A DNA stretch of 64,000 nt from positions 7,926,448 to 7,990,447 of the forward strand of contig BDGG01000002.1 in the NCBI GenBank assembly GCA_001949185.1. The letters run 5' to 3'. The position numbers and the translations under genes were made by a program. Each line of letters begins with the position of its first letter. Position 1 is the stretch's first letter. Source of the stretch: Ramazzottius varieornatus (lineage: Eukaryota > Animalia > Tardigrada). Positions 29,001 through 37,247 of this stretch are shown here, piece by piece. The notes beneath the pieces were generated by a model. It made no database searches and was not told the DNA's origin. It saw only the letters and a program-made list of their open reading frames with translations.

Positions 29001-29979
29001 ACACGACGAGGAAGAAAGTCTTCCCCTTCCTGGCCGAGTCGATCACGGCGGAACTCAAACTTCCGAGTATGCTATTACCGCCGCCTAAAACCTCCTCTTT
29101 GGCTTAATACGATATTTCACTCAGCACCTCACAAAACTGCCATCAGCCTATCCGGTATGGTTTTGTTACTTCCCTCCTGTTTTCCTCTTCGTCGAAGCCG
29201 GCTTTCAGGCACTGGCGCAGCCGTCTGGTCTTCCTTAACCAGAAAAAGAATAACCATCTTTTCTTTTTCTCTTCTTTGAAGTAGAGATAAGTCAAAAAGG
29301 TCAAGGCACCATCGATAGCTTTCCGGTTCAGACTGTAAAACTAGTCAGCGGTTGGGAGCGCAATCACGTCAGGTTTCCGCGATGACGTAGTGCGCGAATT
29401 CATAGGGGAAAGCCGACCGAAGGTGAGCTAAGTGAGCTAAGTGCCACCTTATTACGTGACGTAAAATGATAGACATCAGTTCTCCATGTTGCTCCCTTCC
29501 TTCCGCTTTGACCACCTTCCGGAGAAACCGGCGACGCAAGACAGCTAATGACCACTTTCTCTGGTATGACGCACATCATCAATGGGATGCGCGAGGCTCA
29601 TTCGATAACCGAACATCGTCATGCGATGATCAGATGATTTATACGTGGAATCCGGCTATCCACCTGAGAAGTGAGACAGCCTTCATCAACACACAGAGCC
29701 AGGCTTCAGAAACTCGCAAATCGCAACAAGTCTCAGAATGCTCGAACTTGATCCACAATTCACCCCAAGAGACTAACAGAACGAGGAAAAGTCAATGGAC
29801 ACCACTCAACCATACGTTTGACTGACCGAGATATGCGCCCGTCTCGGAGCGACCGTCGAAGCTACATATTGCAGGATCTACAGATATCCAGCCGTTGACT
29901 CGATAAGCAAATTTAGTAAATTTATGATAGAAGTCATAGAGCTTACAGGACATCACACTGTACACAGACCGATCACACT

Positions 29980-30541
29980 TTATCTCATACGCGGGCCCGA
30001 TGCAAATTCGTTAATCTTCTGCATGATGCTCTCCTTATTCATGTTGGAAAGAGGCACGGACGTTTCCGCTCCGTAACCTAAGAGGAAAAAGACTTCTTTG
30101 AGAATTCATACACGCGTATTCTTCTACAAGCCCACGAAGGAGCACCGGCGTCTCCAAGTGGCAAACGAAACTCGTACTAGAAGCACATGACGTCACAGCC
30201 TTTTGCGATCAGCAACGGACAGTCAACCGAGCAACTGCGACGCCATGAGCAAGTTGACGCGAAAAGTGGTAATGTACCATAACGAGCCCAAAGCCGTGGC
30301 TCAATTTCGCTGCATTCTCTCACAAGGATGGGTAACTCGGGATTCCGCTGCTTCAGAGGGACGTAGAAGCTCTCCATAAAATCCCTGCAATGCATCGAGC
30401 ACGTCAGGAGAACGGGGAGCGAAGCTGTGCCGTGAGTTGGGTAAGAAAAGCTCACCTTGCTCCTTGGCTTGACGGCGACTTCTGGCACATGTGTATCCTC
30501 AGTTCCTTCAGTCCTGCTCCCAGCGCTCTTATTCCCGCCAT
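29980..30541 (-). CDS. NDUFA2: NADH dehydrogenase subunit NDUFA2/B8 (3 exons)
   Basis: [19 protein letters not shown]|DF...[23 protein letters not shown]|[10 protein letters not shown]. Confidence 0.93.
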
Positions 30542-31488
30542 CCTTGGACAAGAGATACCTACTACTTGTCTCAAAACGGACTAAAGGAGTTAGTAAAGAC
30601 TGGAACTCTGCAGAATAAAAGGAAAGAATGAAATATATATTCATGAACACTGAACAGGAATCGCCAGGTCAAGGCTGTGCCGTGCTGCGTCAAACCGTTC
30701 ACGTGATAGTCGCTGCATATTCTTCAACGGCCCTAGCATGTGGTGGAGGGTTAAAGGGGTTTGCAAACTCCAGATGGGTTTAGTGGGCGATCAAGGCTGT
30801 GCCATATGTGAGCAATGTCCCACCCACCAGCCCACCCGTGCAACGAGCGTACGCACCAGGTGCGTGCAGCAGTGTGGACACAACACCCAGTCGACATTTG
30901 AAACGGTTTGGAAAGCCTTGTTCATATCACAGACTTGTGGATTTCAAATCAATCAGTTCGCGTTGTATGCATGAGCGCGTTGGATTGCACATGCAGGTGC
31001 ACGTCCTAGTGCGCTGATTTTATTTCAAGTAAGCTTCCCCAGCTTCCCCACGCACCGTCTCCATTTCCGGCTTCTCTGCCACCCGTCCCCCGAAAAACCA
31101 TTAACGGATTTACAGTTTGAACGGTCGATTTGCAATTTGCATAATGCTGCAGAAATATCAACCATTAATGTTGCAAAACTACCGCGTTGACAAACAAATG
31201 TCCCGTAGAAATTAGTATAATATCGAAGTGAGCTCTTCAGAACTCGAGCTTCTGCCCTGTTTAGATTCATATCTCAAATTCTCGGTTCAGTGTTGAGGCT
31301 TCGGGTCGTAATTAAAGCTGTGGTTTTCGCGCTGTTGCAAAACCGTTTTGATCAAAATGCGCTGTGCAGTTTCAGCCGAAATGGTATGTACTCCACCCTG
31401 CTTGTTTGTTCTTCGTAGACCAGGTCACTCGTGAACAATAAAAACTTCAGCTAACCTACAAGATCCTCGGCTTCCTTATCTCGCGGTT

Positions 31489-34259
31489 ATGCGCATTGAC
31501 CTACTGGGAAATAGGACCGACCTCCTGAGATATTCCAGCCTTTTCTTTCTTATCGCGGGGTGTGGTGTAACCCAAACAACGTTTCACGGTTTGTCCAGCC
31601 AGTATCCCCTGAAAAGCTATCAAAAATTAACGACCATCACCGAACAGATGACGCACCGGGCTCCGGTTGATGAAAACTTGATCAGAGCTCGCCATCGAGC
31701 ATTACACATGGCAAGGTTCGCAAACTACATCACAGAACAGAAGTAATTTGGCCAGTGCAAGTTACTTCTGGAAGGACCATTGTTGCGATCGGCGTTTTAT
31801 AATCGGGTGAAACCTCATAACTGCATAATGGGTTCGAACTGTTCGTGGATAATTACTCGCACAGAATGGAACGCCAGGCCACCCAAGAACGTCACTATGC
31901 TTGCGCTGCCTGGTCCCCACATTGTTCTGAGCCAGACGGCAATGTCGGAGAGCCTTACTTTTGATGTCTGTAGGGCGGAAGTTCGGAAGATTCAGAACCT
32001 GCACATGGACGGAGGGACGACAACGGGCGAAGTGTTTGACGACATTGCCATGAAGTACGGTTGGCTTCTTGCTCGTTTTTCCCAGCAATATTTGTTGATG
32101 CTCATAGTCCAGTTCTGATGATTGCATTATTGTAGCTTCCTTATCTGCGGTGATGGTACGGTTTTCGAGGGCCGGGGGTGGGCAAAAAGAGGCGCTCACC
32201 GACGAGAATGGAACGGCAAAAGTCACTCCATTTACTTCATGGGTGATTATCGTGAAACATCTGGTATGTTCTTGAGACTTGTAATTTATTGATGATACGT
32301 TCTGCAGTAGCAATGCTCTTTGTTGTAGACAGACTTCCTCCTCGAGCTGCTCTGGACGCGGCGAGAAGGCTTATTCAATGTGGTGTCGATAGTCATTTCG
32401 TCGAGCAGAACTACACCCTGTACGGAAGCTACCTCAATGCCGGCGTCCCTGTAGCGTGCCATTGCGGTCCTATTGACAGAGAATCGCCACCATGGAATCC
32501 CGTTACTCCCTTTGCAGCTTCTACCCCTAAGCCACAGGTTTCCATGACCGGCGATACCCGTAACGACAAGTATCTTTACGGAGTACTCGGAGGAGTTATC
32601 GGTTTTACCCTTGTGTGCCTCTTTTTCATGTGGCTCTGGAAACGACGCTCTGGAACGGTAAAACCATTGCGTCCGTTTCTCCCGTGACGACTGCTAAAAA
32701 TCTCAATAATCATGGACTGTTTCCCTGTACAGCGCTTCCTCGAGAAAAAGGTCCGGCTACAGTGTGCTTGGGCGTTGATCCGCTACGAAATACCACCCAA
32801 GCATGTTTGCTTGGTTGATCCACTCGCCGGTTGGTCATTCTTCTGTTGCTTGCGCGGGACGCATAAAATGCGTCTTTTGCTTTCCTACTGGTGGTCACAT
32901 GACTCATGAGATTGCTCGATGGTAACAGGTATCACGCGACCACCAGAAGGGAGCATCAATCAAACGCATTGCATAGAGCACACTCTGATTTTATTTTCAG
33001 GTCCAGACAAATACTTGGGCAAGGGTAATTTTGGTGTTGTTGTCAAAGGCCGGCTAGTAAACTGGAGAGTGTCGGAACTGCGGACAGATTCCACTTTGAT
33101 AAAGACTGCCACGGACCAGTTCGTTGCCATCAAGTTTTTGCCGGACCACAAGAAGAGCGAATGGACGATGAATAATTTCGCTCAAGAGATGGAGATGCTG
33201 ATGAAGGTTGGGAGACATGTCAACATCGTCAACTTCATCGGAGTCGTTCTCGTGGGTAAGTGTGCGAAAGGAGTCACCAAAATGCATACTTCATTTTGTG
33301 GAAATATCTCGTGTAGGTGAACCCATGATCGTTATGGAGTACTGTTCCCTTGGTTCTCTGGACAAGTTTCTCCGCAACCCCAACAATAACCGCCTCAATG
33401 GGCTGGACGCTACATTTGCCAAGTACGAATTCTTTGGCAGGCGCGAAGAGTACAGGCCAAGCTGTTGCGACCTCGACAGCCGCTACATGGTCATGGAACG
33501 AACCCCGGACACACAAATCATTGCCAGCGTCGACGATCTTATTCACTTTGGATACCAAATCTGTCGTGGAATGGATTTCGTGTTTTCCCGAAACATGATC
33601 CATCGCGACCTGGCAGCTCGTAATATTCTTCTCAATTCGGCCATGACAGTCAAGATAGCCGACTTCGGTATGGCTCGCGACAACTCGGAGTACGTTATGC
33701 AAAGCGACACCGTAAGTCGGCCAAACCGTCGATTTCTCACAATGTACATTTCTGGTATGGCGAGCGAAGTGTCCCTTATCTGCAGGTCGAGCTACCTCTG
33801 CGATGGCTTGCTCCTGAGTCCATAACGCGCCGCGGCTCGTATAACATCAAATCCGACGTTTGGTCTTTCGGTGTCACTTTGTGGGAGATCTTGTCGCTGG
33901 GTCGCACTCCATATGAGGAAGAGCTGCCCAAGCTGTACTCATCCGAGCAGCTCCGCACTTTCCTTGCGTCCAACGGGAGACTGCGACAGCCGATTCGAGC
34001 CTGTGATACGGTGTAAGAGGCTTCCGACAGCGCGAACCTGGCCACTTCTTATTGTCTGAAAGCTTTCTGCCGTAGATATGGGATTATGCAAAAGTGTTGG
34101 GCGAAGGAACCAACGGACCGACCTCTCTTTGCTGAATTGACTGCGGAACTTGGCCAACTCCTTCCGCCGCACATGCAACAGGTCTACCTCAAACTGGACG
34201 AGGAGAACAGCGCCTTCAACGAAAAACTCGACAAGGATTATTACTTGACGCACTTATAA
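31489..34259 (+). CDS. PGRP-ectodomain receptor tyrosine kinase (PGRP-TM-PTK); 5' exon uncertain
   Basis: Phase-compatible exons: about 31756-32054, 32136-32263, 32329-32657, 32733-32829, 33001-33255, 33317-33711, 33786-34012, 34076-34259. PGRP motifs [21 protein letters not shown] and FMGDY; [14 protein letters not shown] followed by KRR; kinase motifs [37 protein letters not shown] and CW..RP. Confidence 0.85.
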
Positions 34260-34517
34260 AGAGATTCCTGTTAGCGGTCTTTGTTGAATATCTCAGACTT
34301 TTGAGAAATAAAAACGGCGTTGAGTTAGCGACCTCAAGTCACAAGGCGAAGACCGAAGAAAACACTGGACAACGGAACTAATCGCAGCAAATCGAAATAA
34401 TGAAACGTAAACTCAACCTACAAGAATTAGGCACCGATCTTTAAGTAGCAAATCAAGAAAGCTAGAAGCTTGGTTTCCCATTAAAATAAAGAAAAGGGGC
34501 TCCTCTTGATAGATTTG

Positions 34518-37247
34518 TTAGGATTGTATTTTTTGACTGAAGGTACTGAGAATGTCCTTCGACTTTGGGTATTTTGCTTGAACAGAATTCCAGTCGACCG
34601 CTTGAGCATTGATATTGTGGGCAACCTGAGCGAAAAGGCACCAAAAATTACATGGTATTTTCCATGGTATGCTGTACCATGAAGCGAAGGAAGTGGTTAG
34701 TTTCAGCACCCTGGTTTCAGAATAATTGCGCACCTGTGTACTGACATCAGAGAAGTTTGCCAAGGCACCAAGCAGATGCTGGACTGCCGTATCTGTCAGG
34801 GGAGGTCCCGGCTGAGTCAGCAACTTTAGCAGCGTTGCGCTGATTTGCTCGGCCAGCTGGTCCGTGATTTCCGGGATGGACAAGTTATAGGCCAGCTTGA
34901 TGGCGGCCTCTTGCACCTCCTTCATCCCTTGTTTTCCTAAACTCCAAGTACAGAAGTGCGCGACCGTGTCAACGTTCGACGTCTTCTCGACGACGTCCTC
35001 TAAACTCCATTCAGTCTCGTCGCTCAACCAGCTAAACCCGGAAGTGGTGCTGCACGCGTTACACATCATCTTGATAGCTTCCAGCAGCTCTTCCGAGTCG
35101 GGACTTCGCTGTCTTCCTGGGATAAAATATAACCAGTGAAGTTGTTCATGGAGAAAAGATCGAGTGTATTTATTTACCGAGCATGATCAAGTATTCCAAG
35201 ATGGGATGTTCGGGACAGAACCGAAGCACGTTGATAGCGGAAGATGACTGCAGGAGGTACTGCAGCATCTTGACCGACAAGATCTTAATGTTGCTTTTCA
35301 GCTCCTCACTGACCAAGATGTCGCCTGAAACACAGAACGGTCTGTTCTTGGCATAATTACCTTCTGTTGTGGTTTAGACACACTTGAAGTTTGGTACTTA
35401 CTCAGAAAAGTAAAATGGTTCTTCGACATGCTGAGCAACGCATTGTTCTCGGACGTCGTAGCGAACTCGAAGATTTCGTCCAGCAGTTCGGCGTCTTCCG
35501 CAGGCATCATGGTGCCCAAACCTCGTTGAAGTTGAGCATACACCTCAGTAATCTGGAAAGCAGAGGATCACAATACCGGAAATTAAAGTGGTGGCGCCAC
35601 CAGTTTATACTGTATGACAGGGAGAACCTCGCGAACTGTGAAACGGTAAGAATTTCTTACATCGGATGTGGGAAACACCAAGGGTTTCTTGGCCTCTCCC
35701 CGAGGTGGTGGGGGTGATGACAGCATGTCATCTTCGCTGTCACTAGTGTCAGCATCCCGCGGCAGTCGGGGAGTGGCCCGCGGTAGTGGCGCGTTGACAG
35801 CGGCTTGGGCCGCGGCCATCAGCTCTTCCTCCTCGGCATCATATGCGGCACTCCGGGCTGAACTTGTTGATCCTGTAACGTATCACAGAGTTCATGAGAC
35901 TTCTTGGTCGGGAAGATCGTAAGAAGAAATTTGTAATACACGGGTGTTATCCCATTTCTAAGTTCGAGTACCATACAAGCAGTTAGGGGTTCCGGGACGG
36001 TAGGTTTTCACACGTTGTTTCGCGATTTTATGTAAACGATTTATGTACAACAGTGAAAAAAAGGCATGCTTGATGTTTAGTTCAAATTTCACGGGGGTAA
36101 GACAAAAAGCACTGTGACCGACGTGGGTCAAACCGGTTAGACAATACTCTGGAATATTCACCAAGAATGGTGGATCGTGCGTTTAGGCGATCTGTACGAA
36201 AAGAACTCGTAAAATGGTACTATGTTCACAGATTAGTGGTAGGAGGAAGCTGTGGGTTAACATGGTGTTAGTCTAGATCAGGCAGATGCGTCTGGTTGGA
36301 AGGGTTATGCGAGGATGGGCCACGGTTGGACGGGGGTGCATTTGGTGCCTCACCGAACTCTCGTGATGGATCAGTTCCCACGGGCGTGGCCGTTGCGGAG
36401 TTTGCTGCTTGGTCCAGCAGTAGCCGAATCTGCTGTCCCAGTGGTCTGGAACAGAAACTTAGGAAGATAGAAGTGGGTGACGGGAAGGCCGATGTGAGGG
36501 AAGAGAGCTTACGTTGATAACAGTTCGGATGGAAGGTCCGTGATGTACGAAGGGATGCTTTTCCCCGTGAGAAACTGAGCCATTTCGTTGGAGAAGGTGT
36601 TGCAGTTGTGATCCAACAGATGGTAACGGCTTCCTCTGAACACGAGCGAGATAAATGACAGCCAAGAAAACAAAATACAGTTATCCAACAAGAACCCACT
36701 TGAACGTTGTCATCGCCATCCCGTTCATCCAGTCTAAAAATAGCTCAAATGGGATGCCTGTCAAACCTAGATCCACAACTGTATCCGGAGGTCCCATCTG
36801 AAGCGTTCCCTGAAAAAGAAGATGTGCAAAGCTAAGATTGCCCAGATTGAATATTGCATGAATACCCAGATCTCCGGGAAGACTACGCCGTAACGAACGT
36901 AGATAACTTAACTATGGCAAGCCATACGGCGGGTACGTAAGCGCGTCAACTGGCACAGCAGAGCGCACCATTAAACCTCATCGTGGCTACGCACGATGAT
37001 CTCATCAGTACTTACTGGTGGACAGTTCTCGATCCCCATTCCTCCATAAAAATATTCCTTGTTGTAAGCTACGACTCCCGTGTGCCATACTCCGTCCAGA
37101 TGCTTACCTGTTAAAAGGCGAAACATGAGACAGCGGGCGAGCGGAGCAAATGGGAGCTGAGTAATTACCTAGCCACATCTGCGACAGCGCACGCGCCATT
37201 CCTTTCGACAAGTCATATATGTAAAGCTTCACCGGAGTCTCAGCCAT
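34518..37247 (-). CDS. DESI1: DESI1/PPPDE desumoylating isopeptidase with a C-terminal PUL/armadillo-like helical region (long form); short form stops at 36268
   Basis: [15 protein letters not shown] (catalytic His) and [12 protein letters not shown] (catalytic Cys). A donor at 36353 joins in phase to an exon starting at 35872 and on to helical exons ([16 protein letters not shown]). Confidence 0.82.

Follow-up and report, generated by a model that had tools for sequence, protein, structure and literature searches.

The analysed window, a stretch of 64,000 nucleotides from the genome of the tardigrade Ramazzottius varieornatus (contig BDGG01000002.1), contains an intact and transcribed gene (CDS 31828-34259, plus strand, as are all its features given below) whose one mRNA encodes a peptidoglycan recognition protein (PGRP)-like domain, a transmembrane (TM) helix and a tyrosine kinase. 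Its predicted product is a single-pass membrane protein of 613 aa. As a whole, we read the gene as a PGRP-receptor tyrosine kinase (RTK) that would be inserted with its N-terminus outside by means of a signal-anchor, sense peptidoglycan and signal without Imd, and we give this reading about even odds (probability of roughly 0.5).

Transcript support for the gene

The CDS consists of eight coding exons (31828-32054, 32136-32263, 32329-32657, 32733-32829, 33001-33255, 33317-33711, 33786-34012, and 34076-34259). They are joined by seven GT-AG introns of 61-171 nt, and the spliced model reads as one open frame that is closed only by its terminal stop. The original prediction of eight exons with GT-AG junctions in matching phase was thereby borne out for this CDS. 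Spliced transcript contigs of four runs, taken from four studies, contained each of the seven junctions; intergenic bins were zero, and the runs are therefore RNA-derived. The longest contig (3327 nt) spans 31631 to 34623. The two junctions by which the kinase exons are connected with the PGRP/TM exon (32657/32733 and 32829/33001), for which an RNA check had been suggested, were present in 4/4 runs.

Novel fusions often turn out to be annotation artefacts, and this prior alone speaks for two neighbouring genes, a membrane PGRP and a kinase, having been wrongly merged. The contigs spanning both critical joints in every run rule this out, the frame is continuous, and a paralogue on contig C4 repeats the same domain order and intron positions, so that the probability of such an artefact is negligible. 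The 3' UTR (34260..34479, contig ends at 34428 and 34479) runs into the 3' end of a minus-strand gene that converges on it, and further contigs continue into a CT..AC intron at 34624-34731.

A non-amidase PGRP domain and a complete tyrosine kinase

The spliced frame showed the domain order that had been claimed, namely PGRP domain, Pro/Ser/Thr stalk, TM helix with KRR, juxtamembrane segment and kinase. PGRP matching was scored per exon. In this exon-by-exon search, exons 1, 2, and 3 were collinear on the same solved PGRPs, which upheld the proposed PGRP ectodomain. Exon 1 (31828..32054), containing the initiator Met and the N-terminal third of the domain, matched residues 61-121 of 4z8i_A with 36 bits (E 4.5e-8, phmmer against PDB), with only PGRPs ranking above. 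Exon 2 (32136..32263, junctions confirmed) encodes the PGRP core and matched PDB PGRPs with 38 bits (E 7e-9; 4z8i_A residues 130-168) as well as positions 44-83 of the Pfam Amidase_2 profile (PF01510) with 16.4 bits. Exon 3 (32329..32657) encodes the C-terminal part of the PGRP domain (LIQCGV), a stalk of ~30 Pro/Ser/Thr-rich residues, the TM helix and the sequence KRRSGT. The PDB matches of its PGRP part were weak (14-16 bits, 4z8i_A 172-205) and all to PGRPs, and the few non-PGRP matches of the exon fell on the TM stretch. Amidase_2 was not matched by exons 1 and 3, and the per-exon scores lay below the gathering cut-off. Taken over the three exons, these matches identify residues 1 to ~170 as a PGRP domain.

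Residues of the set His, Tyr, His, Thr/Cys, by which T7-lysozyme-type amidases bind zinc and catalyse, are replaced: the zinc-ligand HH of exon 1 by SQ, DIGY by DIAM (the Tyr to Met exchange lying at the exon 1/2 junction) and the GH of exon 3 by GS. Two other PGRP loci of the same genome retain HH, GHRQ, and CPG. Since the zinc and catalytic residues are gone, the PGRP domain is of receptor type and not an enzyme, as are the non-amidase recognition domains of Drosophila PGRP-LC, PGRP-LF, and the intracellular PGRP-LE. The core PGRP motifs RxEWxARPP, RxIQ.xHM, GRGW..GAH, and LIQCGV are retained, and the ectodomain is predicted to bind peptidoglycan. However, the first Cys of the near-universal PGRP disulfide (C..C before RxIQ) is absent and several groove positions are substituted, so that the domain may no longer bind, a loss that Drosophila PGRP-LCa and PGRP-LF have undergone. 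C5 and C136 are located where, presumably, the disulfide between the PGRP N-terminus and LIQCGV lies.

These losses bear on the possibility that the gene encodes an orphan or repurposed RTK with a developmental or other non-immune role, in which the PGRP fold would survive solely as a scaffold, serving dimerisation or the binding of an endogenous or non-peptidoglycan ligand. Besides the missing catalytic and zinc residues and one missing disulfide residue, the divergence of the ectodomain would fit such a role, its identity between paralogues being 42-57% vs 73-86% for the kinase; PGRP domains are able to lose peptidoglycan binding, PGRP-LCa and PGRP-LF being examples. The retained core motifs argue against it, as does a theme of sensing among the RTKs of this genome, others of which bear GH16, a classical pattern-recognition fold. 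We regard the scaffold explanation as unlikely, though worth serious consideration.

An ESM Atlas search with exon 3 gave no meaningful match (best score 0.79), a representatives search with exon 1 returned neither the protein itself nor a clear orthologue, and thus no full-length database protein to replace the spliced model, and a metagenome scan with the family alignment produced 272 pattern matches, 0 of which were confirmed.

Exon 4 (32733..32829), both flanking junctions of which were found in the four runs, encodes the juxtamembrane segment and is 70% identical to the C4 paralogue. Its sequence RYEIPPKHV is, by its residues, an FGFR/PDGFR-like juxtamembrane motif. The kinase itself occupies the remaining four exons, on each of which Pfam PK_Tyr_Ser-Thr outscored Pkinase. 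Exon 5 (33001..33255; PK_Tyr_Ser-Thr 40 bits) contains the N-lobe with GKGNFG, VAIK, and the alpha-C Glu, and its best PDB matches were FGFR4, FGFR2, and Tie2. Exon 6 (33317..33711; 92.9 bits vs 56.6 for Pkinase) comprises the hinge, a kinase insert of ~50 residues and the activation loop with one Tyr, Y471 (best PDB matches VEGFR1, Kit, MET, and EGFR), and exon 7 (33786..34012; 63.4 bits) the C-lobe (PDGFR-beta, VEGFR2, and FLT3). Exon 8 (34076..34259; 19.2 bits, profile positions 234-258) completes the kinase (CW..RP) and adds a C-terminal tail with the final residues DKDYYLTHL and the stop codon; it is 80% identical to the C4 paralogue, YY included. All kinase motifs are present, including HRDLAARN, PLRWLAPE, and DVWSFG. 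The claim of a complete tyrosine kinase is thus sustained by every catalytic motif and by the Pfam matches on four exons, and the domain, which includes a kinase insert and has a single tyrosine in its activation loop, is complete.

Among solved structures, the kinase is closest to FGFR, PDGFR, VEGFR, and Kit. In common with FGFR, PDGFR, Kit, FLT3, and VEGFR, the window product has a single-pass TM and a WE(F/I)P-like juxtamembrane motif, and it shares HRDLAARN, PxRWxAPE, the kinase insert and the activation-loop tyrosine with the kinase-insert RTKs. Neither the PDB matches nor a tree of own-genome kinases established orthology to any named RTK class. The product differs from these RTKs in its ectodomain, where one PGRP domain takes the place of Ig, FN3 or Cys-rich modules, and in the lack of a signal peptide.

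Start codon and membrane orientation

The CDS had originally been assumed to start at 31489. The upstream ORF at this position (31489..31746 in the ORF list, 85 codons) shows a signal-peptide-like hydrophobic stretch by hydropathy and lies in the same frame as the CDS, from which it is separated by a TAA at 31744-46. Transcript contigs are unspliced over 31631-32054 and retain this TAA with zero base differences (pieces X1, 31631-32054, and X3, 31672-32018, both unspliced with 0 differences), and none of the four runs yielded a contig over 31489-31630, even at a depth of ~52. The start at 31489 was rejected on these grounds. The transcribed 5' leader (31631..31827, the longest contig beginning at 31631) contains upstream ATGs at 31648 (32 codons, closing at the same TAA), 31670, and 31708, which may limit translation. 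The first in-frame ATG past the TAA is located at 31828 in the context cataATGg. No hydrophobic stretch occurs among the first 40 residues (maximum KD9 1.26), and these do not form the signal peptide expected for type I biogenesis. Given the in-frame TAA and the first ATG at 31828, the product that the transcripts support lacks an N-terminal signal peptide and does not count as a classical type I RTK; the type I assignment, which rested on the start at 31489, had to be abandoned. In the window gene, the C4 paralogue and two ENA (metagenomic) fragments alike, a Met lines up at -4 relative to the PGRP Cys.

A true signal-peptide first exon would restore a classical type I PGRP-RTK. This would require translation from 31489 and the removal of the TAA by a first intron such as GT 31567 to AG 31754-55 (189 nt), and the unspliced contigs would then stem from RNA that had kept the intron or was initiated internally. 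The 31489 ORF is in frame with the CDS and its n/h/c layout is plausible for a signal peptide, 16 hypothetical in-frame GT..AG combinations would bypass the TAA, and short 5' tips can be clipped by assemblers, so that the absence of contigs is weak evidence. Moreover, all sister GH16-RTKs and a PGRP-kinase of Paramacrobiotus have signal peptides, which also counts against the signal-anchor reading. However, the transcript contigs showed no such joint, two of them cross the proposed intron unspliced, the region upstream of 31631 is the uncovered one, and it would have to be by chance that three family members share the Met at -4. We therefore consider a hidden signal-peptide exon rather improbable.

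The same stop could mark a pseudogene in the making, in which the TAA at 31744 severed an ancestral signal peptide and the transcript persists without yielding a correctly targeted receptor. This would be in line with the in-frame stop between the signal-peptide-like ORF and the PGRP domain, the upstream ATGs within the leader and the sister copy on C4, which already looks decayed. Such decay is very unlikely in view of the intact 613-codon ORF over eight exons with every kinase motif kept, the canonical splice sites, all of them in use, and the initiator Met, which is common to a diverged relative of other source and implies that the form without signal peptide is old and not a recent accident.

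The TM core (residues 203-222; 32580..32639) has a Kyte-Doolittle 19-residue mean of 2.2, the maximum of the protein. A single TM helix thus lies between the PGRP part and the kinase, as in RTKs, and exon 3 gave a weak Pfam TM_ErbB1 match. The net charge of the 15-residue flanks is 0 on the N side and +6 on the C side, where KRR directly follows the helix. Three N-x-S/T sequons (N4, N21, and N146) are present, all N-terminal of the TM helix, and none in the 391 C-terminal residues. The flank charges, the sequon distribution and the retained PGRP cysteine pair suggest an N-out orientation. As there is no cleavable signal peptide, the TM helix would act as a reverse signal-anchor. It speaks against this reading that foldable N-terminal domains of ~200 aa are not usually translocated in the absence of a signal peptide, and the apparent export of so sizeable an ectodomain would, if the orientation is true, be of interest for membrane-protein biogenesis.

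Relatives and proposed function

The paralogue count that had been called for revealed one further copy, the gene on C4, which appears decayed; the family is therefore not expanding in this genome. The kinase paralogues nearest to the window gene include RTKs with GH16 ectodomains (two on C3 and one each on C11, C6, and C19), which are 35-49% identical to the window kinase and have clear N-terminal signal peptides and one TM helix followed by a basic stop-transfer. The GH16 fold is used by arthropod pattern-recognition proteins (GNBP/beta-GRP); the window gene differs from the GH16-RTKs in its ectodomain family, PGRP, and in having no signal peptide. The one grouping supported in a tree of 15 kinases from this genome was that of window gene and C4 paralogue (100/100); the placement of this pair relative to the GH16-RTKs was not supported. 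The PGRP C-terminus, the stalk and the TM helix all lie within exon 3; this shared exon and the paralogues with other ectodomains make exon shuffling a plausible origin of the fusion.

The only kinase-bearing match among 96 PGRP relatives was XP_055344231.1, an uncharacterised protein of another tardigrade, Paramacrobiotus metropolitanus, with two tandem PGRP-TM-kinase units in one prediction, in the order signal peptide, PGRP, TM, and cytoplasmic protein kinase. Its kinase is Ser/Thr-like (HGDLKPGN; DLD for DFG) and only remotely similar to the window kinase, and the two fusions are probably independent. No co-located PGRP and kinase of this Ser/Thr type was found in the R. varieornatus genome. 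The original remark that no characterised PGRP-RTK was known was borne out: no published description of a PGRP-TM-tyrosine kinase architecture was found in the literature searched. A PGRP-TM-kinase does occur in Paramacrobiotus, albeit a Ser/Thr-like one. The window gene is accordingly presented as a candidate bacterial sensor whose wiring has no earlier description that we found.

Under the signal-anchor reading, the TM helix would let the PGRP domain face the outside, with the kinase in the cytosol. Binding of multivalent peptidoglycan or muropeptides would gather receptors, the gathered kinases would trans-phosphorylate and the signal would pass to phosphotyrosine-dependent pathways, a bacterial-sensing route that would be independent of Imd, RHIM, and NF-kB. 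Drosophila PGRP-LC is accepted to be activated through its clustering by peptidoglycan and, like PGRP-LF and the predicted window product, is membrane-bound. In contrast, the Drosophila membrane PGRPs are type II proteins with an N-terminal anchor and a C-terminal PGRP domain that signal to Imd through a RHIM-like motif and have no enzyme domain, whereas the window product has its PGRP domain at the N-terminus, ahead of the TM, and a tyrosine kinase as its cytoplasmic part. The combination of type II orientation and cytoplasmic RHIM-like motif that marks the PGRP-LC type was not found in it. PGRPs are present in eutardigrades, but Imd, Relish, and NF-kB were not detected; nor were the Toll, Imd, and NF-kB machinery of arthropods found in tardigrades, which reportedly lack the intracellular Toll components (PMC7056985). 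An Imd-independent route is therefore plausible, and microbe detection in tardigrades is an open question, for which a PGRP on a tyrosine kinase, beside the GH16-RTKs of the same genome, would offer a concrete and testable path from receptor to signal.

More tentatively, and with somewhat more doubt than belief, we suggest that tardigrades may have put PGRP and GH16/beta-glucan-recognition, the two pattern-recognition folds classical for arthropods, straight onto RTKs, with the window gene as the member that senses peptidoglycan and is inserted with no signal peptide. If true, this would be an animal counterpart of the plant receptor-like kinases and, among animals, a rare parallel to the LysM receptor kinases of plants. 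The latter (CERK1/LYK), like the bacterial PASTA kinases (PknB/PrkC), combine an ectodomain for cell-wall glycans or muropeptides with one TM helix and a cytoplasmic kinase. The likeness is one of analogy only, as the LysM and PASTA folds are unrelated to PGRP and these proteins are Ser/Thr kinases of other kingdoms.

Gene structure, transcript and translation start

Rebuilding of the gene from the sequence yielded eight coding exons on the plus strand (31828-32054, 32136-32263, 32329-32657, 32733-32829, 33001-33255, 33317-33711, 33786-34012, and 34076-34259). The seven introns of 81, 65, 75, 171, 61, 74, and 63 nt are all of the GT-AG type, the final donor being GT/GTAAGA at 34013, and one frame continues across all eight exons with the terminal stop as the only one.

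The stretch is represented in many sequencing runs of a single organism, and assembled contigs from four runs belonging to four studies were compared with positions 29400-35000. Depth was zero in the intergenic bins 30709-31456 in every run; therefore, these contigs are RNA assemblies and not genomic DNA. All seven junctions were seen as GT..AG skips in each of the four runs, and a single contig of 3327 nt spans 31631 to 34623. The junctions 32657/32733 and 32829/33001, which the original prediction had placed exactly as in the rebuilt model, were spliced in all four runs, joining the PGRP/TM exon to the juxtamembrane exon and the latter to the first kinase exon. This is direct evidence of one mRNA. 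The PGRP-TM-tyrosine kinase architecture is real and expressed, and the anatomy predicted originally stood in its exons, junctions, and domain order, with the exception of its 5' end. Two adjacent genes encoding PGRP-TM and kinase separately were ruled out by the junction-spanning RNA contigs.

The protein had been proposed to start at 31489. However, the 85-codon reading frame opening there (31489-31746), which contains a signal-peptide-like stretch and is in frame with the gene's own coding sequence further downstream, is closed by a TAA at 31744-46, and the RNA contigs are unspliced at this place. Unspliced contigs covered 31631-32054 in one run (X1) and 31672-32018 in another (X3) with no base differences. 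In the contigs of the four runs, 31489-31630 showed neither coverage nor a splice joint. A hidden signal-peptide exon starting from 31489 would fit the signal-peptide look of this frame; the TAA could in principle be skipped through any of sixteen in-frame GT..AG combinations, and short 5' tips can be clipped by assemblers. Given the unspliced contigs through the TAA region and the uncovered 31489-31630, such an exon is unlikely. The first in-frame ATG after the TAA lies at 31828 in a good context (cataATGg), about five residues before the PGRP domain begins. This Met, four residues ahead of the conserved PGRP Cys, is aligned in the paralogue on contig C4 (MSMLCPPITGR) as well as in P0005 and P0097, two 85-aa ENA metagenome fragments (MSSDCPPIVPR) that, like the gene, have lost HH and have their exon end at the same place. 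Position 31828 was taken as the start codon, giving a product of 613 aa that lacks an N-terminal signal peptide. The transcribed leader contains three upstream ATGs (31648, 31670, and 31708). These and the closed upstream frame are suggestive of control at the level of translation, or of what is left from an older 5' end.

At its 3' end the gene overlaps a convergent minus-strand gene (34428-35000; CT..AC intron 34624-34731), into which some contigs read through. The upstream minus-strand neighbour (29627-30632), with two CT..AC introns (30076-30275 and 30384-30454), was expressed in all four runs.

Ectodomain and predicted membrane orientation

The ectodomain was searched exon by exon, so that the scores do not refer to the joined domain. 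Amidase_2 (Pfam) matched exon 2 with 16.4 bits, with no match in exons 1 and 3. Phmmer searches against solved structures gave 36 bits (E 4.5e-8) for exon 1, 38 bits (E 7e-9) for exon 2, and 14-16 bits for exon 3, and the same PDB chains were matched collinearly by the three exons (e.g., 4z8i_A 61-121, 130-168, and 172-205). Nearly all listed structure matches were PGRPs; the few others, from the exon 3 list, fall on the TM stretch outside the PGRP part. The amidase residues are lost (HH to SQ, the Tyr of DIGY to Met, and GH to GS), and the first Cys of the near-universal PGRP disulfide is missing. The Cys pair 5 and 136 is kept and presumably matches the N-terminus/LIQCGV disulfide of PGRPs. 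HH, GHRQ, and CPG are kept in two other PGRP loci of the genome, C14:1236461-1239718 and C10:550894-554220, neither with a kinase nearby. Two stop codons, TGA and TAG, lie within the C10 match and may reflect introns or damage.

Over 19-residue stretches, the hydrophobicity of the protein peaks at residues 203-222 (KD 2.2). The net charge of the 15-residue flanks is 0 before and +6 after this segment; therefore, by the positive-inside rule, an N-out/C-in orientation through a reverse signal-anchor is predicted. The protein has three N-x-S/T sequons, all on the N-terminal side of the TM helix, with none in the 391 residues beyond. Large ectodomains that lack a signal peptide have a precedent in neuregulin-1.

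The best-supported reading, which we infer from this anatomy, is that the PGRP domain would be exposed outside, peptidoglycan would cluster the N-out receptors, and the clustered kinases would trans-activate. An ectodomain repurposed for a ligand other than peptidoglycan is less probable, at perhaps one chance in four.

Distribution of PGRP-kinase fusions

When exon 1 was compared, without a profile, with 1.84 billion representative proteins, 96 matches were returned; Pfam, run on all 96, detected a kinase in a single one, XP_055344231.1 of the tardigrade Paramacrobiotus metropolitanus. This predicted protein of 1204 aa is two PGRP-TM-kinase units merged in one prediction; they are arranged in tandem, and in each a signal peptide precedes PGRP, TM, and kinase. 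Its kinase, unlike that of R. varieornatus, is Ser/Thr-like (HGDLKPGN) and may be a pseudokinase, with DLD where DFG is expected. Because this kinase is Ser/Thr-like and the R. varieornatus kinase is barely similar to it, the two fusions are probably independent. No PGRP co-located with a Paramacrobiotus-type kinase was found in the R. varieornatus genome.

In agreement with the original prediction, which knew of no characterised PGRP-RTK, no description of a PGRP-kinase receptor was found in the literature searched. The architecture is new to that literature, and at least one related uncharacterised sequence is already public. Eutardigrades have PGRPs, whereas Imd, Relish, and NF-kB are not detectable (Mapalo et al., 2020, PMC7056985).

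A further protein, P0021 (236 aa, Logan assembly), is a membrane PGRP of type II, anchored at its N-terminus, in which HH is likewise missing. With 51% identity to exon 1 of the R. varieornatus gene, it may serve as a model for the source from which the ectodomain was acquired.

Kinase, GH16-RTKs and the C4 paralogue

PK_Tyr_Ser-Thr (Pfam) matched four consecutive exons with 40, 93, 63, and 19 bits, each time above Pkinase, and the tyrosine-kinase motifs are complete, including CW..RP. The kinase insert comprises about 50 residues and the activation loop one Tyr. Among solved structures, the N-lobe best matched FGFR4, FGFR2, and Tie2, the core VEGFR1, Kit, MET, and EGFR, and the C-lobe PDGFR-beta, VEGFR2, and FLT3.

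Five kinase matches in the same genome adjoin Pfam GH16 matches, two on contig C3 (1118-1120 kb and 1131-1133 kb; L024 and L025, cut from C3:1117000-1135000) and one each on C11 (L026), C6 (L027), and C19 (L028). Their open frames comprise GH16 domain(s), a strong TM, a basic stretch, and then a tyrosine kinase, with a clear N-terminal signal peptide in four of the five (both on C3 and those on C6 and C19). With five such predicted GH16-RTKs in addition to the PGRP-RTK, pattern-recognition-type ectodomains on RTKs are a theme of the R. varieornatus genome. By their kinases, the GH16-RTKs rank among the closest paralogues of the PGRP-RTK. In a tree of 15 kinases, support was confined to the grouping of the PGRP-RTK with its C4 copy (100/100; long branch), and this pair had no supported relation to the GH16-RTKs. 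The two C3 genes are divergent and about 11 kb apart.

The paralogue count proposed originally yielded one second PGRP-TM-tyrosine kinase copy, at about 661.9-666.2 kb of C4 on the minus strand (~1900-6214 of L017, C4:660000-669000). Domain order and intron positions are the same; the PGRP exons of the two copies are 42-57% identical and the kinase exons 73-86%. The donor GT of its exon 1 is lost, the N-lobe exon carries a frameshift with a stop, the kinase-insert exon carries a second frameshift together with about 0.9 kb of inserted inverted repeat, and one intron contains a fragment of a non-LTR retroelement. The C4 copy is likely a pseudogene. Incipient pseudogenisation of the uninterrupted, fully spliced gene in the window is very improbable. 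Upstream of this copy by about 500 bp, on the minus strand (L017 6711-6752), a lone relic of the C-terminal tail of the family, LNQKLDEEYYLTRL followed by a stop, was observed. Its surroundings contain no further kinase exons, and it may be all that is left of an earlier tandem copy.
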